Assembly: GCA_002269645.1 (NCBI GenBank)
Contig: NIVC01002832.1
Coordinates: 1-50,979, forward strand
Length of the DNA stretch: 50,979 nt
Source: Macrostomum lignano
Lineage: Eukaryota
Reading direction: 5' to 3'
The notes below the pieces were generated by a model. The model saw nothing but the letters and a program-made list of their open reading frames with translations. It had not been told where the DNA came from and ran no database searches. Every line of letters starts with the position of its first letter. Within the stretch, counting starts at the first letter, position 1. The translations under genes and the position numbers were made by a program. Below, one piece after another: positions 1,157 to 47,417 of this stretch.

Positions 1157-1941
1157 GCTCCCCCAGCTGATGGACGCCGCCCGATTCTGCCGCAGGCATG
1201 CAAATTAATTATAAGCGTTATTTAGCAAGTAGCTTTGATTTCCTTTCAAAAAAGGCCAACCAAAATAAACTGTTTAAGCATTAAGAGTCTGTATAACTCG
1301 AATGAGGATCTGCAAGATGGCGAATTGAATAGAGCTTTTAAGCCTTGCTATAAAAAATAAAAATACTAGTTAATGACATTTTAAAGACATACAAACACAA
1401 GAAACGCTATATACGTAACCAAAAGGTGGTAAAATCAAACGTATATTTTTGTTTAATACGCAAATCAGCGCCACTAGAGAAGTACAGGAACAAACGGTCA
1501 CAAAGATAAGCGGACCCTATTGCATAGCATTGCGCTGCTTTAATATATAAACTATCAGCTCAAATTTGCATAATAAAATGCTTTAAAACACAGAAAAAAT
1601 CAACCAATACCAGAGCAGTCAGATGCAAAGTAGATTTGTTGGCGAATTGCCGTTAGAAGAGAGCTTCATAAAGTGCTTATTTAGTTGTGTGCCAAATATT
1701 CCAGTGAAAGATGTGTAGGGGATGATTTTGTTTTGCAATAGATATAAGCTTCATCGAAAAAAACTAGTGGATATATGTATATAAAAATATGATTTATTTT
1801 GAAAATGATTACATTCTGCAGTGTGCTGCCTTTAATAATTTTATTAGTTAAACTGATTTTTCACCCATAAACAAGTGATGTTTATGAAGGATAAAAACGA
1901 AAAAATGCAACTAAACAATCCAATTGGAAGCTTTAAACCAG

Positions 1942-3069: not shown

Positions 3070-5294
3070 GAATGCGAGAGGATATTCATAATGCTTAGTA
3101 CACGAATCATTACGCTAAATTACTCACACTAATGACTTAAAATACGACGAAAGCCTTCACTGGCCATTCTCCGCCAATGGGCTCCCCTAAAAGGGGATAA
3201 ATAAGGATTTTTGGGGCTTAGCCTTAAGTCTATGCCCAAAACTAAGCGTGACTCAACGTTTTATGGCCTAGAAGTAAAATTCTCTATGCCTGAAATTCTA
3301 GGTTAGGGTGTTTGCCACGACGCTTGTGTTTCAGAGTCGGAAATCTGTATGGTCTATGGCCCAACCCAATTTTTATATGCTATCGGGCGCTTTTATTCAT
3401 TTCCAATTCTAGTCGTATATGTCTATCAGCTGTGTTTCACAGTCGGAAATTTGCGTAGTCTAAGGTCCAACCTGTCTTTAATCTGTATGCTTTCAACTGG
3501 GCCACAATACTTGCTTTGAAATTCTCTACTTGATTGTCATTTAACCAGAGAGAACAGCTTTAAACAGCTGGCTTGGCTTGCTGTCTGTGGGAGAGAGCAG
3601 CTTGGAATTGCGAGCTGTCCACTTAATTGGCTGTACTGTCTATGGCCGAGTGTGCTGTTTCATGGCATTTACTTGATCGGCCTTATTATCAACTTGACTG
3701 ACGAAATCAATACAGCTTTTTGCAGCCCATTTGGGCTTACTCGCATTGAATTTAATCCAAGATATGCTTGCTAAGTAATGGTAGCAATGGTAGCGGCTAT
3801 GAAACCCAATCATTAGTTACAGCTGCGCAAAGCAATCTATTCACTGTACTAACACAAGGTGACGTAAAAAATTCAATCTGCTTAACTATAACAAAAAGAG
3901 CATTTTTAGTATGGTCAAAACTCCGCTTCGAGCAGAAGTCTTTGGTCTCTGTTTGACAGTCTAGCATATGGTCCACGATTCTGGGGCTGATCTTGCTCCG
4001 CCGCAGCAGTTGCAAATGAAGCATTGCTCTCGTCTTCACTGCTTGTGACAGTCATGTCTAAATGAACATCTAGGGTTAAAACTACAGAGCGGATAGGCCC
4101 AAATGGGCCGCAAAAGGCTATGCTATAATCTAAACTATGAAATCTATTAAAAATGAAAACGAAAAATGTGCAGTTGTCATCAAGGTTATATTTGTCAAAA
4201 CGATGACGGATATATAAATAATCAAAAAAGGTGAGGGAAAATACCATCAAGTTTTAAAAAAAAACGGACTAGGATTACATTCTGGTACGAACAGTGCAAT
4301 ACGATAAAGATCGAACAGTGGGTCAAGATGGACTTTGTTCACAGATAAATGTTTAGGAATGCACATATTTACATAACGTATGAGGAAAGTAGAGTATAAG
4401 ACTGTAAAAAAGTTTTTGCTATTTTCGTCCACTACATATGGTTAAGCAGGGTAAAGTATACATAAGTAAAGTATAACATAATCAAGTCAGCTGAAGACAA
4501 TGATATTCATTCAAACACAAACAGAAATTGAAGTGTCAGAGAGGCTTGCTTGAAAAAGTCTACTATAGAAACACACAGCAACACACAAAGTTAATGCTTG
4601 CCAAACAAGTACTTGAAAAATTCACTAAAATGAAAAAAAATAAACAGAGAACTGACCTAATTAGGCTATTACGGTGTAAATTTATTGATAACAGGAGGAT
4701 GTGCAAGTCAGCTAAAAGGAAATAATTTTCATTACCTGGCCACTCTATTAGCATAATAGAAGTATCAATATAATGTAGGAATCATTGCAACGTTAAGAAC
4801 ACAATTTGCGTTCAATGCAGGGTAAAATACTGTTAGTTCATCAGCAGCAAACTAAAATATTCAGAACAATTATTACACATAAGTATTATAACTAACAATG
4901 CAAACATCGGTGAAGAAGATAAATATATTTGTTGTGCGAATTGATATCGAATTGAAATTTGATTGTTGGCTAGCGATAAATAAATATGCGAAAATACATC
5001 TGATATGCACACAGAGATGAGCTCAGCAACAGTTAAAATGACATGCATCTCTGAAAATAAATAAATAAATAGATTAGCAATATGCCTAATTCGCTGCATG
5101 GTTGCTATGCTATCACAGCTGGGTGAAATAGAGCTCATTAGAAGCTCATTAGAATCTGCTTAAATTAGAAGCCCAACTCAAAAAGAAAGATTAAAATAAA
5201 TCAATACCAAGACAATACACCGAATGTCAAATGTGTACAACAAACGATTGAGGTAATCATAAGTAGCAAAAACCAAGTAGACAGAAGCGCCCAG

Positions 5295-5440
5295 TCACAA
5301 CCGGCTATCCTCTCTGGAGCCCGAGGCCCCGGTCGATTCGTACAGCTCGAAATTGTCGTCCTCGTCTGGATCGTCCTCGTTGGCCGAGATTGTGACAACT
5401 GCTGTTGTCCGAGCGTTGCTAATGACCGAGTGCGGACCAG
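5295..5440 (-). CDS. Candidate terminal coding exon Z', duplicated copy (xGPHSVISNARTTAVVTISANEDDPDEDDNFELYESTGASGSREDSRL*)
   Basis: Acceptor ctcccgttAG, 146 nt open to TGA. The substitution between copies is synonymous in this frame (ATT/ATC). The 2-nt indel between copies lies just upstream of the acceptor. Confidence 0.55.
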
Positions 5441-5582
5441 CTAACGGGAGTTATAATGATTGATATCAACCAGAGCGAGTTAATCACTTGGGGACTTACA
5501 GCCTTAGCCACAGATTTCATATTACCCAGATGTGTCCCTCCAGCATTCGCTAATGTATTTAGTGGCAGTCTAGGAGGCTCCA

Positions 5583-5885
5583 GGGGGTTGTAGCCTAGTG
5601 TTTAGAGCGTCGTACTCACGACTTAAAGGTGGGGGGTTCGATTTCAGATCCCACTGGAACAATTTGTGTCCTTGAGCAAGACACTTAACTCTGCATTGCT
5701 TCAGTTCAACCAGCTGTAAAATGGGTGCCAGCATTAGCTGGGGTAATTGAGGGTGTGCGTGGCGACCCCCAGTCCTTGGACTGAACAGCCGTACGCAGCC
5801 TTCAGATGCGACGCGCAATAGCTGCGGCTGAGCTGTCGGTTGCACATCTGCCCATTGGGACAGGTGTAATCAATTATTATTATTA
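5583..5885 (+). mobile_element. tRNA-derived CORE-SINE with 12-bp target site duplication
   Basis: A-box TAGCCTAGTG and B-box GGTTCGATTTC. MIR-CORE-like tgtccttgagcaagacacttaac...ctgtaaaatggg. (TTA)n tail. TSD taggaggctcca at 5571-5582 and 5886-5897. Confidence 0.9.
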
Positions 5886-6237
5886 TAGGAGGCTCCAAAA
5901 ACTCCAGGGGGTTAGGGCCACAGACACTAGCTGCCGCTGCTAATGCTACAGTCTATGGTCTAATGCGGCTGGAGTGGCCCATCTAGGGGCATATAGCATC
6001 TGTGATATTAGCTAAAGATAGGCCATGAAAACTTTAAGCTGCTGGCCATAGACCCACAGCCTTAACAGTCTATGGTAAAATAGCACAGTGGCGCATTAAA
6101 ATTCTAGCCATAGTTTATGGTCAGCCCAGCAGGAGCGGAGTTTTTCTATTTCTAGCTCCGGCGTAGAGAGTAAACCCTATCGAAGTCGAGTACATTAAGT
6201 AGTATATGCAGTTTTCTTTAATTCAAAGCGGACAAAC

Positions 6238-6301
6238 CTTGGTATCGGGAGTTAGGTCTCCTGTTGAGCTCTTCGCCTTCCTCTGCGCGGCCCCGGCCGG
6301 G
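6238..6301 (-). CDS. Candidate 64-nt internal exon Y', duplicated copy (PGRGRAEEGEELNRRPNSRYQ)
   Basis: Strong acceptor tctctttccattgcAG and donor AAG|GTTTGT. GC-rich island in AT-rich DNA. Its phase-1 end fits exon Z'. The inter-copy change CGA/AGA is synonymous. Confidence 0.55.
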
Positions 6302-6690
6302 CTGCAATGGAAAGAGATTGACAGCAACAATTGGCAACTTTGAACACAATAATAAATATAAGTTAGTTACGCACGTTATTTAATAGTTACTTAAGGCCTA
6401 ATGCTACACATGGTTAGTAGAACCTTATCAGTATATTAGTACTTAGTTAATTAAAGAAAACGAGTTCGGAAAAAATTGAAGTGCTCACTTATGCATGTAA
6501 ATAGCGTAGAATAAAGAATAAAAAGAATGACTCGAACAGTTAAGAAAGACAACAGATTACAGAACTTGGGGTTTGAATACGAAAATTTGCAGAAAAATGA
6601 GAATATCGCATCACTTCTCACCCGGAACCGGCGAAGCTGCGTAAGAGTTATAATGCAATAATAATTATGCATAATAATAGTTCGAATATA

Positions 6691-8930
6691 ACTGGCATGA
6701 GGCTGAGCACAATAACAGCTCCATCATATTCCATAGCGAGCACTCTGACTGGCATGGGGCTGAGCACAATAACAGCTCCATCATATTCCATAGCGAGCAC
6801 TCTGACTGGCATGAGGCTGAGCACAATAACAGCTCCATCATATTCCATAGCGAGCACTCTGACTGGCATGTGGCTGAGCACAATAACAGCTCCATCATAT
6901 TCCATAGCGAGCACTCTGACTGGCATGAGGCTGAGCACAATAACAGCTCCATCATATTCCATAGCGAGCACTCTGACTGGCATGGGACTGAGCGCAATAA
7001 CAGCTCCATCATATTCCATAGCGAGCACTCTGACTGGCATGAGGCTGAGCACAATAACAGCTCCATCATATTCCATAGCGAGCACTCTGACTGGCATGAG
7101 GCTGAGCACAATAACAGCTCCATCATATTCCATAGCGAGCACTCTGACTGGCATGTGGCTGAGCACAATAACAGCTCCATCATATTCCATAGCGAGCACT
7201 CTGACTGGCATGGGGCTGAGCACAATAACAGCTCCATCATATTCCATAGCGAGCACTCTGACTGGCATGAGGCTGAGCACAATAACAGCTCCATCATATT
7301 CCATAGCGAGCACTCTGACTGGCATGGGGCTGAGCACAATAACAGCTCCATCATATTCCATAGCGAGCACTCTGACTGGCATGGGGCTGAGCACAATAAC
7401 AGCTCCATCATATTCCATAGCGAGCACTCTGACTGGCATGAGGCTGAGCACAATAACAGCTCCATCATATTCCATAGCGAGCACTCTGACTGGCATGGGG
7501 CTGAGCGCAATAACAGCTCCATCATATTCCATAGCGAGCACTCTGACTGGCATGGGGCTGAGCACAATAACAGCTCCATCATATTCCATAGCGAGCACTC
7601 TGACTGGCATGGGGCTGAGCACAATAACAGCTCCATCATATTCCATAGCGAGCACTCTGACTGGCATGGGGCTGAGCACAATAACAGCTCCATCATATTC
7701 CATAGCGAGCACTCTGACTGGCATGAGGCTGAGCACAATAACAGCTCCATCATATTCCATAGCGAGCACTCTGACTGGCATGGGGCTGAGCACAATAACA
7801 GCTCCATCATATTCCATAGCGAGCACTCTGACTGGCATGGGACTGAGCGCAATAACAGCTCCATCATATTCCATAGCGAGCACTCTGACTGGCATGAGGC
7901 TGAGCACAATAACAGCTCCATCATATTCCATAGCGAGCACTCTGACTGGCATGAGGCTGAGCACAATAACAGCTCCATCATATTCCATAGCGAGCACTCT
8001 GACTGGCATGTGGCTGAGCACAATAACAGCTCCATCATATTCCATAGCGAGCACTCTGACTGGCATGGGCTGAGCACAATAACAGCTCCATCATATTCCA
8101 TAGCGAGCACTCTGACTGGCATGGGCTGAGCACAATAACAGCTCCATCATATTCCATAGCGAGCACTCTGACTGGCATGAGGCTGAGCACAATAACAGCT
8201 CCATCATATTCCATAGCGAGCACTCTGACTGGCATGGGGCTGAGCACAATAACAGCTCCATCATATTCCATAGCGAGCACTCTGACTGGCATGGGACTGA
8301 GCGCAATAACAGCTCCATCATATTCCATAGCGAGCACTCTGACTGGCATGAGGCTGAGCACAATAACAGCTCCATCATATTCCATAGCGAGCACTCTGAC
8401 TGGCATGGGGCTGAGCACAATAACAGCTCCATCATATTCCATAGCGAGCACTCTGACTGGCATGGGGCTGAGCGCAATAACAGCTCCATCATATTCCATA
8501 GCGAGCACTCTGACTGGCATGGGGCTGAGCACAATAACAGCTCCATCATATTCCATAGCGAGCACTCTGACTGGCATGGGGCTGAGCACAATAACAGCTC
8601 CATCATATTCCATAGCGAGCACTCTGACTGGCATGAGGCTGAGCACAATAACAGCTCCATCATATTCCATAGCGAGCACTCTGACTGGCATGGGGCTGAG
8701 CACAATAACAGCTCCATCATATTCCATAGCGAGCACTCTGACTGGCATGGGGCTGAGCACAATAACAGCTCCATCATATTCCATAGCGAGCACTCTGACT
8801 GGCATGAGGCTGAGCACAATAACAGCTCCATCATATTCCATAGCGAGCACTCTGACTGGCATGGGGCTGAGCACAATAACAGCTCCATCATATTCCATAG
8901 CGAGCACTCTGACTGGCACTCTGACTGGCA
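6691..8930 (+). repeat. 57-bp minisatellite array 1, 39 full units
   Basis: Unit actggcatgNggctgagcacaataacagctccatcatattccatagcgagcactctg. 6691-8911 = 39 x 57 - 2 (two 56-bp units). Confidence 0.98.
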
Positions 8931-12466: not shown

Positions 12467-14890
12467 TTAATCCGAGTCAGAATCCAACTTGCGGCTCTGC
12501 TTGGCTGTATCGATCTCTATGCGAGGCTTGGGAGCGCCAAAGCCTCCACGTCCACCGCGGCCTCCACCACGACCGCCACGACCACCGCCAAAGCCGCCAC
12601 CTCGGCCACCGCCACGCCCACTGTCAAAGTCACCACGGCCACCGCCAAATCCACCGCGGCCGCCGCCACGGCCACCGCCACGTCCGCCTCCACTGCGATC
12701 TTCGCGATACTCGATCCGGGTCTGCCGACCGTCCAGAGTCAGTCCAGCGTTGACAGCCTCGCTGGCGCTATCAATCGAGTCAAACGTGACGAAAGCAAAT
12801 CCGCGGCTGCGGCCATCATCGCCCTTAGGAATAAACAGATCTTGTGCTTTAGGGAAATACTCCCACAACTGTTCGACAGTGGCACTGTACGGAAGATTAA
12901 ACACGCCAACAGTTTTTGACGGAGGGTTATCTGAACCAGGACCGCCCCCGCCACCGCCACCAAATGACTTCCTTTCCGGCCTTGGCGCAACGAAGGCGAC
13001 AGCAACCTCGCGACCGCCGAATTGTCCAACGCCGCGGAATTCGTCAAAACCGGCAGAGCAGTCAGCCTCTGAATCAAAATCCACAAAGCAGACGCCTGTG
13101 TCAGAACCGGGACGAGTCTTAACATTGTAGCGAGAACCCCCTGGAAAAGCAGCGCGCACATCTGATTCCTCTGCATCGGCAGGCACATTTAGCAAAATAA
13201 CAGAGCGAGCCTGTCCGCGCAGTTCTTCGCGAGATTTGTCTTTCTGAGAAAAGTCATTCGTCATTGGAGCTGAAACCTTCGGTGCACCGTCTCCAAGTAG
13301 TGCTTGGAGATGATCCACCGGTCCGGACAAAGTGTTAATGCTGAACTGTCGATTCTTTAGAGACGCATTTTGGCACTTAGAGGCCGCAGCATCTGCATCA
13401 GATTTACTTTCAAAGCAGATCATTGCAATCGGAGCACTGACTAAACCTGCGTCAAGACGAGCAATGTCTTTGTCGTCCAAAAAGTTGGACAGGTCCTTTC
13501 GAGTGATGGAAGGATCCAGATTGCTTAGCAGAAGGCAATGCGTCGCTTTTGGCACATTATGCTTTCCATTTGGCAGCTTTTCAGACACGGGCGACTTTTT
13601 ATTGGCGTTGTTAGTAAGGGCGATCTTTTTTGGTGGCGGCTGTTCATCATCCGAAGAATCACTGGATGAAGAATCTTGCTTCTTTACTGGTGTCTTTTTG
13701 GGTGTCTTGGCTGCAGGAGTGGCAGCAGCAGGAGCTACTTTCTTAGCTGTTGGCTTCTCATCCTCAGAAGAAGAGTCGCTTGATGACGACTCCTTTTTCT
13801 TTACCGGTGTCTTTGTGGCTTGCTTGGCTGGAGGAGTGGCAGCAGCTGGCTTCTTGGCTGGTGGCTTCTCGTCCTCAGAAGACGAGTCGCTTGATGACGA
13901 CTCCTGCTTCTTTGCCGGTGTTTTTGTGACTGGCTTGGCTGCAGCTGCAGGAGTAGCAGCAGCTGGCTTCTTGGCTGGTGGCTTCTCGTCCTCAGAACAC
14001 GAGTCGCTTGATGACGACTCCTGCTTTTTTACCGGTGTCTTTTTGGGTGTCTTGGCTGCAGGAGCGGCAGCAGCTGGCTTGGCTGCAGGAGTAGCAGCAG
14101 CTGGCTTCTTGGCTGGTGGCTTCTCGTCCTCAGAAGACGAGTCGCTTGATGACGACTCCTGCTTCTTTGCCGGTGTTTTTGTGACTGGCTTGGCTGCAGC
14201 TGCAGGAGTAGCAGCAGCTGGCTTCTTGGCTGGTGGCTTCTCGTCCTCAGAAGACGAGTCGCTTGATGACGACTCCTGCTTTTTTACCGGTGTCTTTTTG
14301 GGTGTCTTGGCTGGAGGAGTTGCAGCAGCTGGCTTCTTGGCTGGTGGCTTCTCGTCCTCAGAAGACGAGTCGCTTGATGACGACTCCTGCTTTTTTACCG
14401 GTGTTTTTTTGGGTGTCTTGGCTGGAGGAGTGGCAGCAGCTGGCTTCTTGGCTGGTGGCTTCTCGTCCTCAGAAGACGAGTCGCTTGACGACGACTCCTG
14501 CTTTTTTACCGGTGTCTTTTTGGGTGTCTTGGCTGCAGGAGTGGCAGCAGCTGGCTTGGCTGCAGGAGTGGCAGCAGCTGGCTTCTTGGCTGGTGGCTTC
14601 TCGTTCTCAGAAGACGAGTCGGTTGATGAGTCCTCAGCCACTACCTTCTTACCAACGGGCTTGACAGGCGCAGCCTTTTTGACTGGCGGCTTAGCGTCAG
14701 ACGAGTCAGAATCAGAATCGCTTGATGATTCGGTAGGCACAGGACGTTTCTGTGGTTTTTTTGCAGCTGATCCAGTCTTGCTGGGACTCGGGATCACTTT
14801 GCCTCCAGGGGTTGTTGGCTTTTTCACTTTCTCATCTTCGGATGATGAGTCCTCAGAGGACGACGATTGCTGACGCGGCATTTTAGGCAT
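12467..14890 (-). CDS. NCL: Nucleolin-like protein, intronless, 807 aa
   Basis: Ser/acidic and Lys/Pro/Ala repeats with TPxK motifs, three RRMs (for example RGFAFVTF) and a C-terminal RGG/GAR domain. Confidence 0.9.
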   Translation of the reverse strand: MPKMPRQQSSSSEDSSSEDEKVKKPTTPGGKVIPSPSKTGSAAKKPQKRPVPTESSSDSDSDSSDAKPPVKKAAPVKPVGKKVVAEDSSTDSSSENEKPPAKKPAAATPAAKPAAATPAAKTPKKTPVKKQESSSSDSSSEDEKPPAKKPAAATPPAKTPKKTPVKKQESSSSDSSSEDEKPPAKKPAAATPPAKTPKKTPVKKQESSSSDSSSEDEKPPAKKPAAATPAAAAKPVTKTPAKKQESSSSDSSSEDEKPPAKKPAAATPAAKPAAAAPAAKTPKKTPVKKQESSSSDSCSEDEKPPAKKPAAATPAAAAKPVTKTPAKKQESSSSDSSSEDEKPPAKKPAAATPPAKQATKTPVKKKESSSSDSSSEDEKPTAKKVAPAAATPAAKTPKKTPVKKQDSSSSDSSDDEQPPPKKIALTNNANKKSPVSEKLPNGKHNVPKATHCLLLSNLDPSITRKDLSNFLDDKDIARLDAGLVSAPIAMICFESKSDADAAASKCQNASLKNRQFSINTLSGPVDHLQALLGDGAPKVSAPMTNDFSQKDKSREELRGQARSVILLNVPADAEESDVRAAFPGGSRYNVKTRPGSDTGVCFVDFDSEADCSAGFDEFRGVGQFGGREVAVAFVAPRPERKSFGGGGGGGPGSDNPPSKTVGVFNLPYSATVEQLWEYFPKAQDLFIPKGDDGRSRGFAFVTFDSIDSASEAVNAGLTLDGRQTRIEYREDRSGGGRGGGRGGGRGGFGGGRGDFDSGRGGGRGGGFGGGRGGRGGGRGGRGGFGAPKPRIEIDTAKQSRKLDSDSD

Positions 14891-15457: not shown

Positions 15458-16813
15458 CTAAGACAGGCCGCTCAGATGGCGGTACAGCCGCTCATAGAAG
15501 GAGCGCTGCATGCAACGTGTCACTGTCCCGCCAGATTCAGCATCAGCATCGGGGTCAGACTTTTCGTTTGTATTAAGCTCCACATCTTTCAATGGAGCAC
15601 GTGTTGGCGCTAGACTGCCCTTACGGCCGCATCGCAGAAATCGGCAAATACTGCTATTGGCCGGAAAAGCCAAGCTAAGAAGAGGACTACGCAGCACTGT
15701 AAAGTCGGCGTGGTCCCAGGACAGATTCGGCTGTACGCCAGCCAGATCAGTAGCGTTTGTGTAGTACCAGCGACCCTGTTCTGGCTGCTCCGAATTCAAC
15801 TCGCCGCCAATACTGTGCGAGCCGCCAAAAGGATAACGCTGACTGGCAATTGGTACTAGGCCGTCGTTGTGGCACCAATCTAAGTCGAGGTCTGGACGGT
15901 AAAACTCCTGATGTAACCGATGATCAGCATCTGTAGAATGGTTCCGATGTTTAATACGCACTCTGCGCGAGCACATATAGCGACAAGAGGGCAGAAAAAA
16001 TGAGCGACAGTCTCGACTTGGAGTCGCACAGTTCGAACAAGAAGTTCCTGGCGCTGTGCACTTTGAAACGCAGGACAGATAGTATGTGGATGGAAAGTCA
16101 TCAAGAAATCCCGAATAATTGATGCGAGAGCAGCCTTGAATGGACAAATCGTAAGCCAGGTTATCAGTTCCAGCGAAAATTCCGCTGGAGCGCAGTCGAG
16201 ATGGATAAGCAACATCAGTGTCGGATAGGCCCCAATGTTCCAGAATCCAGTTGCGCGGCAATAGACGACTAAAAACGTTCAGCATGCGCGGCCAACGAAA
16301 TAAGCCGGTAGCTTCGTCGCAGCCGAACATATAGACAGCGGGCGAGCCGTTGAGCGGACTGGCCAGGCAAGTTACGGATGTGACCCAATTGGACTCGGTG
16401 CCCTCCGACCAGAAATCATCAGCCAACAGGCGCTGGAGAGTTCTAGAAGTGTTTCCACCGGCCGAGTGTCCAACTAGATGAATTGGCTGCTCAGCGCACC
16501 AGTCTGGGTGGAGGCCTCGGCCAGTAAAGTCCGGGCCCCATCGCTCGTGGCCATGCAAAGCTGAGTGCTCTTCGCCATAGTCTGTCCGGCATCCGCGAAG
16601 CTGCGCGTATAGCTCGCATGCTCGGTCATGCTGCGAACTGATTGGGCCAACACCGGCCTCCAAGACTGTCAGGCCGCTGGTGTCCGTGCGAGAATCCACA
16701 GCCGTCTCCCAGTAGGAGACGGCGCCGCTAGGCAGAACCAGCTGGCCTGGGCCCCAGCCTAGCAGGCCGTGCACCAGAGCCACGTGACGCGTCTTGGCCA
16801 GGTGAGTGCGCAT
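15458..16813 (-). CDS. Lipase, bacterial family I.5/I.6-like alpha/beta hydrolase, intact copy 2, 451 aa, intronless
   Basis: Putative triad Ser (GHSAGG), Asp (NDGLV), His (WDHADF). Family motifs HDRACELYAQLRG and DYGEEHS. Confidence 0.9.
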   Translation of the reverse strand: MRTHLAKTRHVALVHGLLGWGPGQLVLPSGAVSYWETAVDSRTDTSGLTVLEAGVGPISSQHDRACELYAQLRGCRTDYGEEHSALHGHERWGPDFTGRGLHPDWCAEQPIHLVGHSAGGNTSRTLQRLLADDFWSEGTESNWVTSVTCLASPLNGSPAVYMFGCDEATGLFRWPRMLNVFSRLLPRNWILEHWGLSDTDVAYPSRLRSSGIFAGTDNLAYDLSIQGCSRINYSGFLDDFPSTYYLSCVSKCTAPGTSCSNCATPSRDCRSFFLPSCRYMCSRRVRIKHRNHSTDADHRLHQEFYRPDLDLDWCHNDGLVPIASQRYPFGGSHSIGGELNSEQPEQGRWYYTNATDLAGVQPNLSWDHADFTVLRSPLLSLAFPANSSICRFLRCGRKGSLAPTRAPLKDVELNTNEKSDPDADAESGGTVTRCMQRSFYERLYRHLSGLS

Positions 16814-17607
16814 GCTCCCCAGCTGATGGACGCCGCCCGATTCTGCCGCAGGCTGGAAAATTAATTATAAGCGTTATTTAGCAAGTAGCTTTGATTTCCT
16901 TTCAAAAAAGGCCAACCAAAATAAACTGTTTAAGCATTAAGAGTCTGTATAACTCGAATGAGGATCTGCAAGATGGCGAATTGAATAGAGCTTTTAAGCC
17001 TTGCTATAAAAAATAAAAATACTAGTTAATGTTTTTTTAAAGACATACAAACACAAGAAACGCTATATACGTAACCAAAAGGTGGTAAAATCAAACGTAT
17101 ATTTTTGTTTAATACGCAAATCAGCGCCACTAGAGAAGTACAGGAACAAACGGTCACAAAGATAAGCGGACCCTATTGCATAGCATTGCGCTGCTTTAAT
17201 ATATAAACTATCAGCTCAAATTTGCATAATAAAATGCTTTAAAACACAGAAAAAATCAACCAATACCAGAGCAGTCAGATGCAAAGTAGATTCGTTGGCG
17301 AATTGCCGTTAGAAGAGAGCTTCATAAAGTGCTTATTTAGTTGTGTGCCAAATATTCCAGTGAAAGATAAAAAATCGTGTAGGGGATGATTTTGTTTTGC
17401 AATAGATATAAGCTTCATCGAAAAAAACTAGTGGATATATGTATATAAAAATATGATTTATTTTGAAAATGATTACATTCTGCATAGTGTGTTACCTTTA
17501 ATAATTTTATTATTTAAACTGATTTTTCACCCATAAACAAGTGATGTTTACGAAGAATAAAAACGAAAAAATGCAACTAAACAATCCAATTGGAAGCTTT
17601 AAACCAG

Positions 17608-18735
17608 TCAAGGCAAGTGGCACCAATCGATGGTCGATTTTCCAACCGACTTCAAATAGTCGTTGGCTTCCTTAAAGTACATTTTGCCAAAGAAGCCGCC
17701 CCGATTAACGGCCAGAGGCGACGGATGAGCGCCGCAAATGACCTTGTGCTTGCGCTTATCAATTTTGGCGCCCTTTTTCTGGGCATAGTTGCCCCACAGT
17801 ATGAATACTAGGCCTGCGCAGCGAGAGTTGAGCGTAGCGACCACGGCGTCAGTGAACGTCTCCCAGCCGCGGCCCTGATGCGAATTCGCCTCACCGCGGC
17901 GAACAGTGAGCACAGCGTTGAGCAGTAGCACACCTTGCTCAGCCCAGCCAGTCAGATCGCCATGTCCTGGATGCTGAAACTTGTCCGGAAAATTGTTCGA
18001 CACCTCTTTGTAAATGTTGAGCAGGCTGGGAGGCGGCACGGTCGGCCGGCGGACCGAGAAGCAGAGCCCGTGGGCCTGGTTAGGGCCGTGATAGGGGTCC
18101 TGGCCCAGGATGACCACCTTCACCTCCTGCAGGCGGCAGGCGCGAGTCCAGGAGAAGACCTCCCCAGGCGGAGGGTAGATTGTCTTGCTGGAGCGCTCGG
18201 CCCGAACAAATTCAGCCAGCTGGACAAAGTAAGTCTTAGTGAGCTCAGGCTTCAGGGCCTGCATCCAGCTGATACCGAAGTCAACCACCAGCGACTGAAC
18301 AGCGGCTGGCTGGGCGCTCAGAAACTGGCTCTGGTTCTCCTTTCCGAAGCTGGACGGCGAAGCCAGAAACGCGTTGAGATTCTGCTGCGGCCGCGGCGGT
18401 GTCTCAGTTGATAGGCAGGGACGCTTCGGCTCGGAATTTTTCATCTCCCCGGAGCAGTCTTTGTCCTCGTCTTTGTCGGCGCTCAAAGGTCGCTTATCCA
18501 TGGACTTGCGGCTTTCCTGCTGATTCTGTAGCCAATTGGACCTTGACTCAACTTTTTCATCCTTTCTTTCTTGATCGGGCGTCGAAGTTTGGTCAGCGTC
18601 CTGCTTGGACGAGGAAGATTTCTCGCCATCTTTTGGCATTGTTTTAAAGAACTTAGAAATTTGAGTCTGAGCCATTGCCTGTCTAGTCTGTCTGCTAGTG
18701 CGCTGGATGGCGAAGTGCGCGATTTGAGCTAGCAT
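17608..18735 (-). CDS. UNG: Uracil-DNA glycosylase, copy 2
   Basis: Same motifs as copy 1. Two amino-acid differences (QSLM/VVDF, NSRS/CAG). Confidence 0.97.
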   Translation of the reverse strand: MLAQIAHFAIQRTSRQTRQAMAQTQISKFFKTMPKDGEKSSSSKQDADQTSTPDQERKDEKVESRSNWLQNQQESRKSMDKRPLSADKDEDKDCSGEMKNSEPKRPCLSTETPPRPQQNLNAFLASPSSFGKENQSQFLSAQPAAVQSLVVDFGISWMQALKPELTKTYFVQLAEFVRAERSSKTIYPPPGEVFSWTRACRLQEVKVVILGQDPYHGPNQAHGLCFSVRRPTVPPPSLLNIYKEVSNNFPDKFQHPGHGDLTGWAEQGVLLLNAVLTVRRGEANSHQGRGWETFTDAVVATLNSRCAGLVFILWGNYAQKKGAKIDKRKHKVICGAHPSPLAVNRGGFFGKMYFKEANDYLKSVGKSTIDWCHLP

Positions 18736-20922
18736 GAATGCGAGAGGATATTCATAATGCTTAGTACACGAATCATTACGCTAAATTACTCACACTAATG
18801 ACTTAAAATACGACGAAAGCCTTCACTGGCCATTCTCCGCCAATGGGCTCCCTAAAAGGGGATAAATAAGGATTTTTGGGGCTTAGCCTTAAGTCTATGC
18901 CCAAAACTAAGCGTGACTCAACGTTTTATGGCCTAGAAGTAAAATTCTCTATGCCTGAAATTCTAGGTTAGGGTGTTTGCCACGACGCTTGTGTTTCAGA
19001 GTCGGAAATCTGTATGGTCTATGGCCCAACCCAATTTTTATATGCTATCGGGCGCTTTTATTCATTTCCAATTCTAGTCGTATATGTCTATCAGCTGTGT
19101 TTCACAGTCGGAAATTTGCGTAGTCTAAGGTCCAACCTGTCTTTAATCTGTATGCTTTCAACTGGGCCACAATACTTGCTTTGAAATTCTCTACTTGATT
19201 GTCATTTAACCAGAGAGAACAGCTTTAAACAGCTGGCTTGGCTTGCTGTCTGTGGGAGAGAGCAGCTTGGAATTGCGAGCTGTCCACTTGATTGGCTGTA
19301 CTGTCTATGGCCGAGTGTGCTGTTTCATGGCATTTACTTGATCGGCCTTATTATCAACTTGACTAACGAAATCAATACAGCTTTTTGCAGCCCATTTGGG
19401 CTTACTCGCATTGAATTTAATCCAAGATACGTTTGCATAAAACCCAATCATTAGTTACAGCTGCGCAAAGCAATTTATTCACAGTACCAACACAAGGTGA
19501 CGTAAAAGTTAAATCTGCTAAAATATAACAAAAAAAGCATTTTTAGTATGGTCAAAACTCCGCAGAAGTCTTTGTTCTCTGTTTGACAGTCTAGCATATG
19601 GTCCACGATTCTGGAGCTGATCTTGCTCCGCCGCAGCAGTTGCAAATGAAGCATTGCTCTCATCTTCACTGCTTGTGACAGTCATGTCTAAATGAACATC
19701 TAGGGTTAAAACTACAGAGCGGATAGGCCCAAATGGGCCGCAAAAGGCTATGCTATAATCTAAACTATGAAATCTATTAAAAATGAAAACGAAAAATGTG
19801 CAGTTGTCATCAAGGTTATATTTGTCAAAACGATGACGGATATATAAATAATCAAAAAAGGTGAGGGAAAATACCATCAAGTTTTAAAAAAAACGGACTA
19901 GGATTACATTCTGGTACGAACAGTGCAATACGATAAAGATCGAACAGTGGGTCAAGATGGACTTTGTTCACAGATAAATGTTTAGGAATGCACATATTTA
20001 CATAACGTATGAGGAAAGTAGAGTATAAGACTGTAAAAAAGTTTTTGCTATTTTCGTCCACTACATATGGTTAAGCAGGGTAAAGTATACATAAGTAAAG
20101 TATAACATAATCAAGTCAACTGAAGACAATGATATTCATTCAAACACAAACAGAAATTGAAGTGTCAGAGAGGCTTGCTTGAAAAAGTCTACTATAGAAA
20201 CACACAGCAACACACAAAGTTAATGCTTGCCAAACAAGTACTTGAAAAATTCACTAAAATGAAAAAAAATAAACAGAGAACTGACCTAATTAGGCTATTA
20301 CGGTGTAAATTTATTGATAACAGGAGGATGTGCAAGTCAGCTAAAAGGAAATAATTTTCATTACCTGGCCACTCTATTAGCATAATAGAAGTATCAATAT
20401 AATGTAGAAATCATTGCAACGTTAAGAACACAATTTGCGTTCAATGCAGGGTAAAATACTGTTAGTTCATCAGCAGCAAACTAAAATATTCAGAACAATT
20501 ATTACACATAAGTATTATAACTAACAATGCAAACATCGGTGAAGAAGATAAATATATTTGTTGTGCGAATTGATATCGAATTGAAATTTGATTGTTGGCT
20601 AGCGATAAATAAATATGCGAAAATACATCTGATATGCACACAGAGATGAGCTCAGCAACAGTTAAAATGACATGCATCTCTGAAAATAAATAAATAAATA
20701 GATTAGCAATATGCCTAATTCGCTGCATGGTTGCTATGCTATCACAGCTGGGTGAAATAGAGCTCATTAGAAGCTCATTAGAATCTGCTTAAATTAGAAG
20801 CCCAACTCAAAAAGAAAGATTAAAATAAATCAATACCAAGACAATACACCGAATGTCAATGTGTACAACAAACGATTGAGGTAATCATAAGTAGCAAAAA
20901 CCAAGTAGACAGAAGCGCCCAG

Positions 20923-21068
20923 TCACAACCGGCTATCCTCTCTGGAGCCCGAGGCCCCGGTCGATTCGTACAGCTCGAAATTGTCGTCCTCGTCTGGATC
21001 GTCCTCGTTGGCCGAGATTGTGACAACTGCTGTTGTCCGAGCGTTGCTGATGACCGAGTGCGGACCAG
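20923..21068 (-). CDS. Candidate terminal exon Z, possibly the Shal/Kv4 C-terminus
   Basis: As for Z'. TTAVVTI loosely recalls the TTAIISI segment of vertebrate Kv4 C-termini (weak similarity). Confidence 0.5.
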
Positions 21069-21212
21069 CTAACGGGAGTTATATAATGATTGATATCAAC
21101 CAGAGCGAGTTAATCACTTGGGGACTTACAGCCTTAGCCACAGATTTCATATTACCCAGATGTGTCCCTCCAGCATTCGCTAATGTATTTAGTGGCAGTC
21201 TAGGAGGCTCCA

Positions 21213-21515
21213 GGGGGTTGTAGCCTAGTGTTTAGAGCGTCGTACTCACGACTTAAAGGGGGGTTCGATTTCAGATCCCACTGGAACAATTTGTGTCCTT
21301 GAGCAAGACACTTAACTCTGCATTGTTTCAGTTCAACCAGCTGTAAAATGGGTGCCAGCATTAGCTGGGGTAATTGAGGGTGTGCGTGGCGACCCCCAGT
21401 TCTTGGATTGAACAGCCGTAAGCAGCCTTCAGATGCGACGCGCAATAGCTGCGGCTGAGCTGTCGGTTGCACATCTGCCCATTGGGACAGGTGTAATCAA
21501 TTATTATTATTATTA
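21213..21515 (+). mobile_element. CORE-SINE, duplicated copy of 5583-5885
   Basis: Same TSD taggaggctcca at 21201-21212 and 21516-21527. The tail has one more TTA unit. Confidence 0.9.
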
Positions 21516-21868
21516 TAGGAGGCTCCAAAAACTCCAGGGGGTTAGGGCCACAGACACTAGCTGCCGCTGCTAATGCTACAGTCTATGGTCTAATGCGGCT
21601 GGAGTGGCCCATCTAGGGGGCATATAGAATCTGTGATATTAGCTAAAGATAGGCCATGAAAACTTTAAGCTGCTGGCCATAGACCCACAGCCTTAACAGT
21701 CTATGGTAAAATAGCACAGTGGCGCATTAAAATTCTAGCTATAGTTTATGGTCAGCCCAGCAGGAGCGGAGTTTTTTTATTTCTAGCTCCGGCGTAGAGA
21801 GTAAACCCTATCGAAGTCTAGTACATTAAGTAGTACATGCAGTTTTCTTTAATTCAAAGCGAACAAAC

Positions 21869-21932
21869 CTTGGTATCTGGAGTTAGGTCTCCTGTTGAGC
21901 TCTTCGCCTTCCTCTGCGCGGCCCCGGCCGGG
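21869..21932 (-). CDS. Candidate 64-nt exon Y
   Basis: As for Y'. Confidence 0.55.
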
Positions 21933-22329
21933 CTGCAATGGAAAGAGATTGACAGCAACAATTGGAAACTTTGTGAACACAATAATAAATATAAGTTAGT
22001 TACGCACGCTATTTAATAGTTACTTAAGGCCTGATGCTACACATGGTTAGTAGAACCTTATCAGTATATTAGTAATTTTACTTAGTTAATTAAAGAAAAC
22101 GAGTTCGGAAAAAAATGAAGTGCTCACTTATGCATAGAAATAGCGTAGAATAAAGAATAAAGAGAATGACTCGAACAGTTAAGAAAGACAACAGATTACA
22201 GAACTTGGGGTTTGAATACGAAAATTTGCAGAAAAATGAGAATATCGCATCACTTCTCACCCGGAACCGGCGAAGCTGCGTAAGAGTTATAATGCAATAA
22301 TAATTATGCATAATAATAGTTCGAATATA

Positions 22330-24562
22330 ACTGGCATGAGGCTGAGCACAATAACAGCTCCATCATATTCCATAGCGAGCACTCTGACTGGCATGGGCTG
22401 AGCACAATAACAGCTCCATCATATTCCATAGCGAGCACTCTGACTGGCATGAGGCTGAGCACAATAACAGCTCCATCATATTCCATAGCGAGCACTCTGA
22501 CTGGCATGGGCTGAGCACAATAACAGCTCCATCATATTCCATAGCGAGCACTCTGACTGGCATGAGGCTGAGCACAATAACAGCTCCATCATATTCCATA
22601 GCGAGCACTCTGACTGGCATGAGGCTGAGCACAATAACAGCTCCATCATATTCCATAGCGAGCACTCTGACTGGCATGAGGCTGAGCACAATAACAGCTC
22701 CATCATATTCCATAGCGAGCACTCTGACTGGCATGAGGCTGAGCACAATAACAGCTCCATCATATTCCATAGCGAGCACTCTGACTGGCATGAGGCTGAG
22801 CACAATAACAGCTCCATCATATTCCATAGCGAGCACTCTGACTGGCATGGGCTGAGCACAATAACAGCTCCATCATATTCCATAGCGAGCACTCTGACTG
22901 GCATGAGGCTGAGCACAATAACAGCTCCATCATATTCCATAGCGAGCACTCTGACTGGCATGAGGCTGAGCACAATAACAGCTCCATCATATTCCATAGC
23001 GAGCACTCTGACTGGCATGAGGCTGAGCACAATAACAGCTCCATCATATTCCATAGCGAGCACTCTGACTGGCATGGGCTGAGCACAATAACAGCTCCAT
23101 CATATTCCATAGCGAGCACTCTGACTGGCATGAGGCTGAGCACAATAACAGCTCCATCATATTCCATAGCGAGCACTCTGACTGGCATGAGGCTGAGCAC
23201 AATAACAGCTCCATCATATTCCATAGCGAGCACTCTGACTGGCATGGGCTGAGCACAATAACAGCTCCATCATATTCCATAGCGAGCACTCTGACTGGCA
23301 TGAGGCTGAGCACAATAACAGCTCCATCATATTCCATAGCGAGCACTCTGACTGGCATGGGGCTGAGCACAATAACAGCTCCATCATATTCCATAGCGAG
23401 CACTCTGACTGGCATGGGCTGAGCACAATAACAGCTCCATCATATTCCATAGCGAGCACTCTGACTGGCATGGGGCTGAGCACAATAACAGCTCCATCAT
23501 ATTCCATAGCGAGCACTCTGACTGGCATGAGGCTGAGCACAATAACAGCTCCATCATATTCCATAGCGAGCACTCTGACTGGCATGAGGCTGAGCACAAT
23601 AACAGCTCCATCATATTCCATAGCGAGCACTCTGACTGGCATGAGGCTGAGCACAATAACAGCTCCATCATATTCCATAGCGAGCACTCTGACTGGCATG
23701 AGGCTGAGCACAATAACAGCTCCATCATATTCCATAGCGAGCACTCTGACTGGCATGGGCTGAGCACAATAACAGCTCCATCATATTCCATAGCGAGCAC
23801 TCTGACTGGCATGAGGCTGAGCACAATAACAGCTCCATCATATTCCATAGCGAGCACTCTGACTGGCATGAGGCTGAGCACAATAACAGCTCCATCATAT
23901 TCCATAGCGAGCACTCTGACTGGCATGGGCTGAGCACAATAACAGCTCCATCATATTCCATAGCGAGCACTCTGACTGGCATGAGGCTGAGCACAATAAC
24001 AGCTCCATCATATTCCATAGCGAGCACTCTGACTGGCATGGGGCTGAGCACAATAACAGCTCCATCATATTCCATAGCGAGCACTCTGACTGGCATGAGG
24101 CTGAGCACAATAACAGCTCCATCATATTCCATAGCGAGCACTCTGACTGGCATGAGGCTGAGCACAATAACAGCTCCATCATATTCCATAGCGAGCACTC
24201 TGACTGGCATGGGCTGAGCACAATAACAGCTCCATCATATTCCATAGCGAGCACTCTGACTGGCATGAGGCTGAGCACAATAACAGCTCCATCATATTCC
24301 ATAGCGAGCACTCTGACTGGCATGAGGCTGAGCACAATAACAGCTCCATCATATTCCATAGCGAGCACTCTGACTGGCATGGGGCTGAGCACAATAACAG
24401 CTCCATCATATTCCATAGCGAGCACTCTGACTGGCATGGGGCTGAGCACAATAACAGCTCCATCATATTCCATAGCGAGCACTCTGACTGGCATGGGGCT
24501 GAGCACAATAACAGCTCCATCATATTCCATAGCGAGCACTCTGACTGGCATGGGGCTGAGCA
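22330..24562 (+). repeat. 57-bp minisatellite array 2, 39 full units plus a partial unit
   Basis: 22330-24543 = 39 x 57 - 9 (nine 56-bp units), then partial actggcatggggctgagca. Confidence 0.98.
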
Positions 24563-29338: not shown

Positions 29339-29413
29339 TGTGCCAAGAAGAACACGGAAATAGGCCGAAGAAACATAAATATTGTTTTCGATTATTTTAA
29401 AACCTTAGAATGA

Positions 29414-47288: not shown

Positions 47289-47417
47289 CTGTAAATAGAG
47301 GGAAATTAAAGAGTGAAACATGAAATAAAACTTTCATTAGCTTTAATAATAAACTATGTCAGTAGTAGCTTTAAAGGGTCCGGCAAACCCGTTTAATATA
47401 AAGCAAATACGACTCAC

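Follow-up and report, generated by a model that had tools for sequence, protein, structure and literature searches.

The window analysed here, a 50,979-nucleotide stretch of the genome of the flatworm Macrostomum lignano (contig NIVC01002832.1), carries a lipase gene at positions 15458..16813 of the reverse strand. In the reading that we consider likely, it encodes a functional cytosolic enzyme of the Lip_C family, whose ancestor reached an early flatworm by ancient transfer from a non-animal donor and has been inherited vertically ever since. A preliminary description of the sequence had put the gene forward as a candidate for horizontal transfer. A horizontal origin is the most economical reading of the sequence comparisons when it is taken as an ancient event; the gene is neither private to Macrostomum nor recently gained, but belongs to a flatworm gene family with orthologues in schistosomes. 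Because the flatworm sequences form a clade that includes these orthologues as well as deeply diverged paralogues, the horizontal reading can be held only in its ancient form.

Gene structure and conserved residues

The gene, the second of two lipase copies in the window and a member of paralogue group A (Mlig020078 type), is an intact, intronless coding sequence for 451 amino acids, supported by its open reading frame (ORF) and by Pfam, PDB and fold matches. Its product clusters with the M. lignano proteins PAA54961.1 and PAA56203.1, to which it is at least 90% identical. All the motifs that had been quoted for this ORF are present, namely HGLLGWG (aa 15-21), HDRACELYAQL (aa 62-72), DYGEEHSALHGHERWG (aa 78-93), PIHLVGHSAGG (aa 110-120) and NWVTSVT (aa 142-148). 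The absence of introns was also correctly noted, as one single ORF is homologous from the N-terminus through the C-terminal helix FYERLYRHLSGLS, a helix found in bacterial relatives as well. Intronlessness is nevertheless weak evidence here, because both flanking animal genes are single ORFs and two lipase paralogues do contain introns. The protein lacks a signal peptide, in agreement with the earlier description, since residue 10 is already the start of its first core strand (beta-1) and its N-terminus aligns with those of bacterial proteins that have none.

The predicted catalytic triad S117/D317/H368 stands in register in alignments A1 and A4. The codon of the nucleophile Ser117 lies at 16463..16465 (reverse strand, as for all lipase features below) within GHSAGG (aa 115-120; 16454-16471) and is conserved in A1 and A4, while the catalytic acid Asp317 of an NDG motif (15863..15865) and the catalytic base His368 of a WDH motif (15710..15712) are invariant in A1, A3 and A4. 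Four putative zinc ligands are invariant in A4, three of them clustered at 16547..16627 (Asp63, 16625-16627; His83, 16565-16567; His89, 16547-16549) and the fourth being Asp217 (16163-16165). They align with the WDRA.E, AAH, HGH and D..YDL positions of solved I.5-like lipases, and we take them to be the counterparts of Asp61, His81, His87 and Asp238 in the numbering of the Geobacillus zinc site.

The protein had also been credited with a Cys-rich insert. The cysteines are there, seven of them within aa 248-281, yet the segment (aa 246-283; 15965..16078) is for the most part no insert: its counterpart in bacteria is a homologous stretch without Cys, and the model places the segment in the core with confidence. 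Paralogues B and C have five and one cysteines in the same segment, respectively (A4). The true inserts lie elsewhere, and both have low pLDDT. The His-rich insert RVRIKHRNHSTDADHRLHQEF (aa 284-304; 15902..15964; pLDDT 57-67) is found in paralogue A only and faces a gap in all other aligned sequences. The other is an extension after the catalytic His (aa 372-432; 15518..15700; A4), with pLDDT below 50 at aa 395-419 of the AlphaFold2 (AF2) model. All flatworm sequences have a post-His extension, which the bacterial relatives in A4 lack; its start, with an R..LL motif, is common to all flatworm members, and the remainder is Macrostomum-specific and predicted to be disordered. The lid region (aa ~165-200, pLDDT 66-82) is shorter than in bacterial relatives. 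In strict-sense I.5/I.6 lipases, which hydrolyse triacylglycerols, a long two-helix lid confers interfacial activation.

Family assignment and predicted function

The protein matches Pfam Lip_C (PF24708) with E=2.7e-32 and 112.4 bits against a cut-off of 27, the match spanning aa 11-237 only and the C-terminal half having diverged. Its top solved relatives by sequence are lipases of Caldibacillus, Staphylococcus aureus, Geobacillus and Clostridium (E 1e-32 to 1e-25). The AlphaFold2 model (pLDDT 83.7, pTM 0.87) gave the same picture: the top 43 Foldseek matches in the PDB are all family I.5/I.6 lipases (E 1e-27 to 1e-22, TM 0.58-0.72), and the next fold family follows at E 1e-8, a gap of 14 orders of magnitude. 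Judged by sequence and model together, the resemblance is far beyond chance, and the window protein is assigned to the alpha/beta-hydrolases of the Lip_C superfamily, with a predicted fold that includes the extra domain typical of I.5/I.6 lipases. The Pfam, PDB sequence and Foldseek matches thus bear out the earlier view that the enzyme is I.5/I.6-like and not a pancreatic or acid lipase. Membership in the strict sense is another matter: the I.5 pentapeptide AHSQG is replaced by GHSAG, the secretion signal of both families and the pro-region of I.6 are absent, and the supergroup to which the flatworm genes belong (support 96.5-100%) excludes the Geobacillus and Staphylococcus lipases.

From the conserved residues and the predicted fold we infer an enzymatic activity, zinc binding and a cytosolic location. 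With His368 and Asp317 activating it, Ser117 of GHSAGG would attack a carboxylic ester, most likely that of a lipid, and the putative zinc site formed by Asp63, His83, His89 and Asp217 would brace the extra domain beside the active site. Since the protein has neither signal peptide nor membrane segment, it is expected to work inside the cell, probably as a cytosolic zinc-site hydrolase of carboxylic esters. Catalysis may not be conserved across the whole family, because the lid is shortened, the schistosome proteins have CHS(T/G)A at the nucleophile elbow, and one relative carries Cys where the nucleophile Ser stands (A4).

Duplication and genomic context

The gene had been described as duplicated, and the duplication is plain. 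The segment at 15655..24550, which contains the lipase, a uracil-DNA glycosylase (UNG) gene and a 57-bp minisatellite, is 98.3% identical to 1..8918 of the window, so that the duplicated segment is at least 8.9 kb long. The first lipase copy (1..1156, reverse strand) has lost its 3' end at the contig end, its assembled ORF (32..1156) encoding 374 aa. It carries three 1-bp deletions in short homopolymers, equivalent to 15795, 15715 and 15684 and all within 140 nt of the contig end, and no substitution separates the two copies over the 1,156 bp of lipase sequence, compared with 53 over the remaining ~6.6 kb of the segment. The frameshift of copy 1 is probably an assembly error, because single-base homopolymer deletions lie so close to the contig end without any substitution. 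The pair is a very recent tandem segmental duplication.

Eukaryotic flanks, on the strength of which contamination had been considered unlikely, are confirmed. Upstream lies the intronless UNG gene (17608..18735, reverse strand; 375 aa; Pfam UDG, 9e-18), with its duplicate at 1942-3069, and downstream an intronless nucleolin-like gene (12467..14890, reverse strand; 807 aa; Pfam RRM_1), whose product combines acidic/Ser repeats, RRMs and a GAR tail; a Shal-type Kv channel gene is also among the neighbours. The order of UDG followed by lipase is repeated on another M. lignano contig, and the full order Kv4, UNG, lipase, nucleolin-like is found on an independent contig. At another locus of the genome, lipase paralogue C is likewise followed by a nucleolin-like homologue, the window gene being 46% identical over 163 aa (tblastn) to the RRM gene beside that paralogue. 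The GC and GC3 of the lipase coding sequence (55.4/55.5%) are inside the range of its neighbours. No obvious canonical AATAAA was seen near the lipase stop codon in the 567-bp spacer. The gene is physically integrated in the animal genome, as is documented by its animal flanks, the repeated gene order, the intron-bearing paralogues and the location of the schistosome orthologues on chromosomes.

Paralogues and constraint in Macrostomum lignano

Three deeply diverged lipase paralogue groups, 41-51% identical to one another, occur in M. lignano. Paralogue B is 41% identical to the window protein, and paralogue C 51-54% in the N-terminal half. Within the lipase domain there are four GT-AG introns in paralogue C and two in paralogue B, none at a shared position, and these intron-bearing paralogues sit on contigs of 0.55 and 1.46 Mb. 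Two UniProt entries that looked like a fourth paralogue (A0A1I8FK36, 'Lipase', and A0A1I8FBJ6, 'FGGY_N domain-containing') are both frameshift-ridden paralogue B from an older assembly. An origin of the intronless window gene as a retrocopy of an intron-bearing parent was judged unlikely, because the introns of B and C differ in position and the schistosome orthologues are intronless as well; an intronless ancestor is simpler.

Intact copies are found in the window (copy 2) and on another contig. Two group-A copies differ by 12 synonymous and 8 non-synonymous changes, giving pN/pS = 0.21, a ratio that, together with the intact catalytic residues, indicates a gene kept under purifying selection and functional in the recipient.

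Orthologues and phylogeny

Orthologues were found in Trichobilharzia szidati, Schistosoma curassoni, S. mekongi, S. mansoni (Smp_037780) and S. rodhaini; these schistosomatid genes are intronless and lie on chromosomes of 89-217 Mb. Among named flatworm taxa, the family was seen only in Macrostomum and schistosomatids, and several losses within flatworms must therefore be assumed. No non-flatworm metazoan homologue was among the named matches of the database searches. The literature yielded no functional study of Smp_037780 and no account of the Lip_C family as horizontally transferred genes of flatworms; lipases are mentioned in a Luticola genome paper, which proved irrelevant.

Trees were built by neighbour-joining (NJ) with a simple distance correction, on a large set of 193 taxa and on a reduced set. 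The three M. lignano groups form one clade (bootstrap 96%), and all flatworm sequences fall in one clade with 80-88% support in the large set and 96% in the reduced one. In this clade the schistosomes join two Logan contigs (support 100), and Macrostomum (96) branches beside them. The two contigs, P0258 and P0264 (runs DRR639055 and SRR33002330), are the sole matches of the exhaustive search that join the flatworm clade. They might not come from flatworms; their flanks hold no informative genes, and a literature search on their runs gave no matches. The branching reconstructed from these sequences within the clade agrees with the species phylogeny of flatworms. A vertically inherited clade of animal orthologues, which the preliminary description had named as the finding that would speak against transfer, thus exists inside Platyhelminthes and does not extend across Metazoa.

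Beyond the flatworms, the short bacterial proteins and the oomycete and dinoflagellate (SAR) proteins group with the flatworm clade at 96-100% support, and this supergroup leaves out the lipases of Staphylococcus, Geobacillus, Clostridium and chytrids. The bacterial relatives come from Cyanobacteria, Chloroflexia, Nitrospirales, Methylocystis, Bradyrhizobium and a deltaproteobacterium, where the genes stand in bacterial contexts. In the reduced set, 44-68% of bootstrap replicates give the flatworms a bacterial sister group and 23-45% a SAR one, and the large NJ tree sets the flatworm clade beside the SAR group with support below 5%. The window protein is on average 39.6% identical to members of the bacterial short clade, compared with 29.3% for SAR and 30.9% for chytrids. 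A general eukaryotic clade including animals was also considered, and a query with a Cladochytrium homologue returned nothing but secreted Clostridium-type lipases and sequences from chytrids and Phytophthora; the history of the chytrid genes is a different one.

Origin of the family and rival explanations

The proposed history starts from one ancestral intronless gene, which would predate the split of Macrostomorpha from other rhabditophoran flatworms. We infer both the direction and the donor of its transfer: the ancestor would most probably have been gained horizontally from a non-animal donor, for which a bacterium with the short, signal-peptide-less subfamily is favoured and a protist possible. 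Thereafter the gene would have been inherited vertically, duplicated together with its nucleolin-like neighbour and supplied with introns in paralogues B and C, while it adopted the base composition of the host and was maintained by purifying selection. A more specific version states that a bacterial zinc-site lipase gene entered flatworms once, before Macrostomorpha and the other rhabditophorans parted, and gave rise to a flatworm-specific cytosolic family with three groups in Macrostomum and Smp_037780 in human blood flukes; in our estimate, its chances of being right and wrong are evenly balanced.

An intronless ORF without a signal peptide, whose best non-Macrostomum matches in the first search were bacterial at ~39% identity, might suggest a recent transfer of a bacterial lipase gene into Macrostomum alone, followed by duplication. 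This is very improbable in view of paralogue groups just 41-51% identical to one another, introns in two of the paralogues, schistosome orthologues that cluster with the Macrostomum genes, a closest bacterial protein that is only ~39-44% identical, and a base composition like that of host genes. Bacterial contamination or a chimeric assembly, for which the bacterial type of the protein family alone would speak, can practically be dismissed: the order Kv4, UNG, lipase, nucleolin-like recurs on an independent contig, spliceosomal introns interrupt the paralogues on the 0.55- and 1.46-Mb contigs, and the orthologues lie on chromosome-scale schistosome scaffolds. The gene could also be a decaying or non-catalytic relic, either pseudo-enzyme or pseudogene, as the frameshifts of copy 1 as assembled, the shortened lid, the large low-confidence inserts and the altered nucleophile-elbow residues of the schistosome relatives would allow. 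On the other hand, intact copies exist in the window (copy 2) and on another contig, the triad and zinc-ligand residues are preserved, pN/pS is 0.21, and the three 1-bp homopolymer deletions of copy 1, at most 140 nt from the contig end and unaccompanied by substitutions, fit an assembly error, so that decay is improbable.

Two further explanations dispense with a bacterial donor. An ancient eukaryotic gene may have descended vertically into animals without any transfer and been lost from all sampled animal lineages but some flatworms. Supergroup members in the oomycetes Aphanomyces, Achlya and Lagenidium and in the dinoflagellate Breviolum are consistent with such descent, as are the 23-45% of bootstrap replicates in which the flatworm clade is sister to SAR. 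It would, however, demand very many independent losses, since no other metazoan was among the named search matches; the sole fungal relatives seen, the chytrids, lie in another subclade beside Clostridium-type lipases; flatworm proteins are ~10 percentage points nearer to the bacterial short clade than to SAR and lack the hydrophobic membrane-like segment of the SAR proteins; and no intron position is common even among the Macrostomum paralogues. We regard this explanation as unlikely. A transfer between eukaryotes, in which an early flatworm took the gene from a protist, for instance an oomycete- or alveolate-like organism that was its prey or its parasite, draws on the same bootstrap proportions in the reduced set (23-45%) and on the placement by SAR in the large NJ tree (support below 5%). 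Similarity and domain architecture both favour the bacterial short clade instead, the SAR proteins being longer, with inserted hydrophobic segments or tandem domains, and a protist donor is rather unlikely. An ancient transfer from a non-animal donor, followed by vertical inheritance, accordingly stays our preferred reading.

Significance

Well-supported ancient transfers of metabolic enzymes into animals that were then kept across a phylum are uncommon, and to our knowledge little has been documented for flatworms on ancient transfers of metabolic enzymes. The present case has controls that are often missing in transfer claims, including physical integration, intron-bearing paralogues, orthologues in distant flatworms and purifying selection, and it illustrates that 'intronless and bacterial-like' need not mean 'recent'. 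If the proposed history is true, the family would be a phylum-level marker of an ancient horizontal transfer into animals. It would also include a parasite enzyme that the host may lack, no homologue having been seen in other animals, vertebrate hosts included, and the schistosome member, should it prove essential, could attract practical interest as an enzyme specific to the parasite. RNAi and in situ hybridisation, for which M. lignano is a tractable laboratory model, could show the role of a cytosolic I.5-like lipase in an animal; a first functional handle on the large, little-studied, signal-peptide-less bacterial subfamily would follow.

Comparison with known lipases

Within the flatworm clade, S. 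mansoni Smp_037780 (UniProt G4V647, named 'Lipase') and its orthologues are intronless and signal-peptide-less like the window gene. They share with the window protein the post-His extension and the Asp, His and zinc-ligand positions, but differ in their low identity (~29-33%), in CHS(T/G)A in place of GHSAG, in extra Cys-containing inserts and in their long branches.

The closest group outside flatworms consists of the bacterial 'short' Lip_C proteins (~380-395 aa, signal-peptide-less), 39-44% identical over the full length, such as a 'lipase-like domain-containing protein' of Bradyrhizobium sp. HKCCYLS and those of Methylocystis, Calothrix, Desmonostoc, Chloroflexia and Nitrospirales MAGs. 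These proteins have in common with the window protein GPISSxHDRACE, LLAxDFWG, the triad and the C-terminal helix Q..FY..LY.RLA.L, whereas they lack the post-His extension, the His-rich insert and the Cys-rich substitutions, and their lid region is longer. Their gene neighbourhoods provide no functional clue, the neighbours (SLT transglycosylase, trypsin-like peptidase, PhoD, IS1595 transposase, tyrosinase, NAD synthase) differing at every locus. The oomycete and dinoflagellate Lip_C proteins (Aphanomyces, Achlya, Lagenidium, Breviolum) belong to the same supergroup (96-100%). Identity is 39-50% in their N-terminal half and ~29% overall; they are also longer proteins, in which either a hydrophobic membrane-like segment separates the two conserved halves or the domains occur in tandem.

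The Geobacillus/Bacillus lipases of family I.5 (T1, L1, BTL2; 2dsn, 1ku0, 2w22, 5ce5) have the same fold as the model (Foldseek E ~1e-27 to 1e-24, TM ~0.6-0.7), the triad, and the zinc site that is the hallmark of that family, with which the putative ligands of the window protein align. They differ in being secreted by means of a signal peptide, in AHSQG, in a long two-helix lid, in their ~25-32% identity and in their position outside the supergroup. The staphylococcal lipases of family I.6 (S. aureus SAL2/Geh and S. hyicus; 8s9r, 6ksi, 2hih) likewise share the fold, a GHSxGG-type elbow and the zinc-ligand positions, but they are secreted pre-pro-enzymes, ~23-28% identical to the window protein, and form a separate subclade.

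Identity and anatomy of the lipase

The lipase at 15458-16813 (minus strand) is encoded by one open reading frame of 451 codons, in which all the motifs quoted in the preliminary description are found: HGLLGWG, HDRACELYAQL, DYGEEHSALHGHERWG, PIHLVGHSAGG and NWVTSVT. Its Pfam match to Lip_C (PF24708) reaches 112 bits against a cut-off of 27, and the solved structures related to it by sequence are only those of bacterial family I.5 and I.6 lipases (Caldibacillus, Staphylococcus aureus, S. hyicus, Geobacillus, Bacillus, Pelosinus and Clostridium EstA; E 1e-32 to 1e-25). Confidence is high in an AlphaFold2 model computed from 69 aligned sequences (mean pLDDT 83.7, pTM 0.87). The best 43 PDB matches of this model all belong to family I.5/I.6 (E 1e-27 to 1e-22, TM 0.58-0.72), the next family in fold matching being the Pseudomonas/Burkholderia I.1/I.2 lipases at 1e-8. 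The bacterial I.5/I.6 type is therefore real and far beyond chance by Pfam, by PDB sequence matches and by fold.

The catalytic triad, Ser117 (GHSAGG), Asp317 (NDG) and His368 (WDH), is in register with that of the bacterial enzymes. Asp63, His83, His89 and Asp217 align with the zinc ligands of Geobacillus lipases (D61/H81/H87/D238 in their numbering) and are invariant in the aligned flatworm, bacterial and Bacillus-type sequences. The reading frame is intron-free, as originally described, and homologous from end to end, and its C-terminal helix QRSFYERLYRHLSGLS is common to the bacterial relatives. The reported lack of a signal peptide also holds, since core strand 1 already begins at residue 10 and the N-terminus lines up with those of bacterial proteins starting at the same point. 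The Cys-rich insert described at the outset was correct in composition, with seven Cys within aa 248-281, but it is not an insert: this stretch matches, position by position, a bacterial segment that has no Cys, and the model places it in the core (pLDDT 83-98). What is genuinely inserted is a loop rich in His (aa 284-304, pLDDT 57-67), together with a long extension past the catalytic His (aa 372-432, pLDDT largely below 50). Relative to the related proteins, the lid region is shortened (about aa 165-200).

Genomic setting and segmental duplication

The lipase lies between an intronless uracil-DNA glycosylase (UNG) gene upstream (17608-18735, minus strand) and, downstream, an intronless gene for a nucleolin-like RRM/GAR protein of 807 aa (12467-14890, minus strand), which, besides its RRM domains and GAR tail, contains some ten acidic/Ser-rich repeats of 111-138 nt. 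Farther along the window, at 31332-32439 (minus strand), are exons of a Shal-type (Kv4) K+ channel (Pfam Shal-type, BTB_2 and Ion_trans). Another M. lignano contig keeps the gene order Kv4, UNG, lipase, nucleolin-like, with the DUF3399 part of Kv4 upstream of UNG and the lipase, and two M. lignano proteins are at least 90% identical to the window ORF (PAA54961.1 and PAA56203.1, BOX15_Mlig020078g12 and g8). The GC content of the lipase CDS (55.4%; GC3 55.5%) falls between the values of the neighbouring genes. These animal flanks, their repeated order and the host-like GC exclude contamination, which had been judged unlikely. Intronlessness, which had been offered as evidence of foreign origin, carries no weight within the window, given that both neighbours, UNG and the nucleolin-like gene, consist of single ORFs as well; it gains meaning only through comparison across flatworms. 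The three consecutive same-strand genes (12467-18735, minus strand) are separated by spacers of only 794 and 567 bp, a spacing that could indicate co-transcription, M. lignano being a trans-splicing flatworm.

The suggested duplication of the lipase is evident from the 98.3% identity of positions 1-8918 to 15655-24550, a unit comprising the lipase and UNG genes plus ~39 copies of a 57-bp minisatellite. The second lipase copy (1-1156, minus strand) shows zero substitutions over the shared 1,156 bp, against ~9 expected at the segment average (53 in about 6.6 kb). Three 1-bp deletions (GG to G, CCC to CC, TT to T) are its sole differences, all less than 140 nt from the contig end; together with truncation by that end they leave an ORF of 374 aa. 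These deletions are probably long-read assembly errors at the contig end rather than decay. Between the adjacent UNG copies (1942-3069 and 17608-18735, minus strand) there are four substitutions, two of them altering the amino acid (V/M, C/S), against none in the lipase CDS. The minisatellite arrays (6691-8918 and 22330-24562, with 98% internal identity) give rise to long but spurious ORFs, which occupy several frames of either strand.

Other features of the window were also recorded. Tandem arrays occupy 29413-30160 (83 bp x 9 copies, 99% identity) and 43003-43400 (39 bp x 10 copies, one frame of which encodes a Pro/Ser-rich repeat), and a very AT-rich block at about 35000-39000 (GC 27-32%, GC skew -0.30) is unlike the remaining window. 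A tandem pair of ORFs that resemble each other (46723-47337, 204 aa, and 47371-48006, 211 aa; minus strand), both ending in ...GYADRL(V/I)IYL, gave no match in a Pfam search. In the GC-rich end (48000-50979, 54%), an RNase H domain fragment at 48249-48725 (plus strand; Pfam E=1.2e-5) is probably a retroelement remnant.

The flatworm gene family

With a limit of E up to 1e-3, an exhaustive HMMER search yielded 1,173 homologues, of which 79 had E up to 1e-30, and its two best matches were M. lignano proteins of paralogue group C (Mlig017597g1 and Mlig033366g1). These bear a low-complexity N-terminal extension and are 51-54% identical to the window lipase, a member of group A, in the N-terminal half; group B (Mlig011019g2, Mlig023909g2) had shown 41% identity in the first search. 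The lipase domain of paralogue C is interrupted by four canonical GT-AG introns and that of paralogue B by two, none at a shared position. Directly downstream of paralogue C, on the same strand of another scaffold (locus L037, 13210-16643), lies an RRM gene homologous to the nucleolin-like gene of the window (46% identity over 163 aa), so the lipase and its neighbour were duplicated jointly long ago as an old gene pair. Two group-A copies differ by 12 synonymous and 8 non-synonymous changes (pN/pS 0.21), which shows continued purifying selection. Two further UniProt entries, A0A1I8FK36 ('Lipase') and A0A1I8FBJ6 ('FGGY_N domain-containing'), were set aside as frameshift-scrambled paralogue B from an older M. 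lignano assembly, and an annotation artefact seems to lie behind the FGGY_N name.

When the Macrostomum sequences and three further relatives were combined into a profile, it recovered orthologues in Trichobilharzia szidati, Schistosoma curassoni, S. mekongi, S. mansoni (Smp_037780, UniProt G4V647) and S. rodhaini, all intronless and on chromosomes of 89-217 Mb. Their nucleophile elbow reads Cys-His-Ser-(Thr/Gly)-Ala instead of Gly-His-Ser-x-Gly (S. mekongi, L036 8001-9470; T. szidati, L034 10001-11452; S. mansoni, P0449), and they carry extra Cys-containing inserts. P0264, one of two relatives from SRA contigs, has Cys at the position of the nucleophile Ser. To judge from these residues, the chemistry of the family may differ among flatworm lineages. 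A short extension past the catalytic His, with an R..LL motif, is common to all flatworm members and is not found in the aligned bacterial relatives.

Phylogeny and origin

Neighbour-joining trees (200-300 bootstraps) were built from trimmed MAFFT alignments. The three Macrostomum groups are monophyletic at 96% in the 193-sequence tree, and an all-flatworm clade, including two intronless contigs from SRA runs DRR639055 and SRR33002330, receives 80-88%. Its topology, ((schistosomes,(two SRA contigs))100, Macrostomum 96), agrees, for the named taxa, with the accepted view that Macrostomorpha separated from all other rhabditophorans. Flatworm, short signal-peptide-less bacterial and oomycete/dinoflagellate (SAR) proteins form a supergroup at 96.5% (100% in a reduced set), outside which fall the classical Staphylococcus, Geobacillus, Clostridium and chytrid lipases. 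Within it, the flatworm sister is bacterial in 44-68% of bootstrap replicates and SAR in 23-45%. The mean identity of the window lipase is 39.6% to the bacterial short clade (maximum 44.3%), 29.3% to SAR, 30.9% to chytrids and 31.6% to Staphylococcus/Bacillus-type lipases, a ranking repeated when paralogues B and C or the schistosome protein are compared instead.

When species-representative genomes were scanned, bacterial relatives turned up in Calothrix, Desmonostoc, Chloroflexia, Nitrospirales, Methylocystis, Bradyrhizobium, a deltaproteobacterium and Candidatus Uabimicrobium, with ordinary bacterial genes around them. A lipase-like homologue in an alphaproteobacterial MAG (L007, 263-1186) adjoins an IS1595-family transposase.

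Other animals were absent among the named matches of three word-indexed searches, and the only exhaustive-search matches to enter the flatworm clade were the two SRA-contig proteins, P0258 and P0264. We found no paper on these M. lignano and schistosome proteins or their origin. Of the horizontal transfer first suggested, only an ancient version survives, placed roughly at phylum level; the notion of a newly arrived foreign gene fails on the flatworm family and its intron-bearing paralogues. On the most economical reading, an early flatworm took up an intronless gene once, the donor being a non-animal. The same distribution might be ascribed to an ancient eukaryotic gene lost almost everywhere, which we consider improbable. 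For the single acquisition, a bacterial donor is favoured on similarity and architecture. The acquired gene would then have been inherited vertically, its base composition ameliorating to that of the host, with duplication that took adjacent genes along, introns arising independently in two of the Macrostomum paralogues, losses in several flatworm lineages and continued purifying selection.

Proposed action and comparison with known lipases

The window lipase is probably a soluble cytosolic serine hydrolase in which Ser117, His368 and Asp317 would act on a carboxylic ester, with a putative structural zinc site holding the accessory domain. With its shortened lid, the enzyme may have an active site less covered than that of interfacially activated I.5 lipases, an arrangement that would suit esterase, phospholipase or monoacylglycerol-type substrates. 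The segments rich in Cys and His, close to the active-site face, could provide extra metal binding or regulation.

In UniProt, the M. lignano and schistosome proteins are labelled 'Lipase' or 'Lipase-like C-terminal domain-containing'. The window lipase is predicted to work and fold as family I.5/I.6 enzymes do, but differs from the strict families in tree position and in lacking their secretion signal, and it does not have the AHSQG motif of strict family I.5. It is best filed in the Lip_C superfamily, within an uncharacterised signal-peptide-less subclade.
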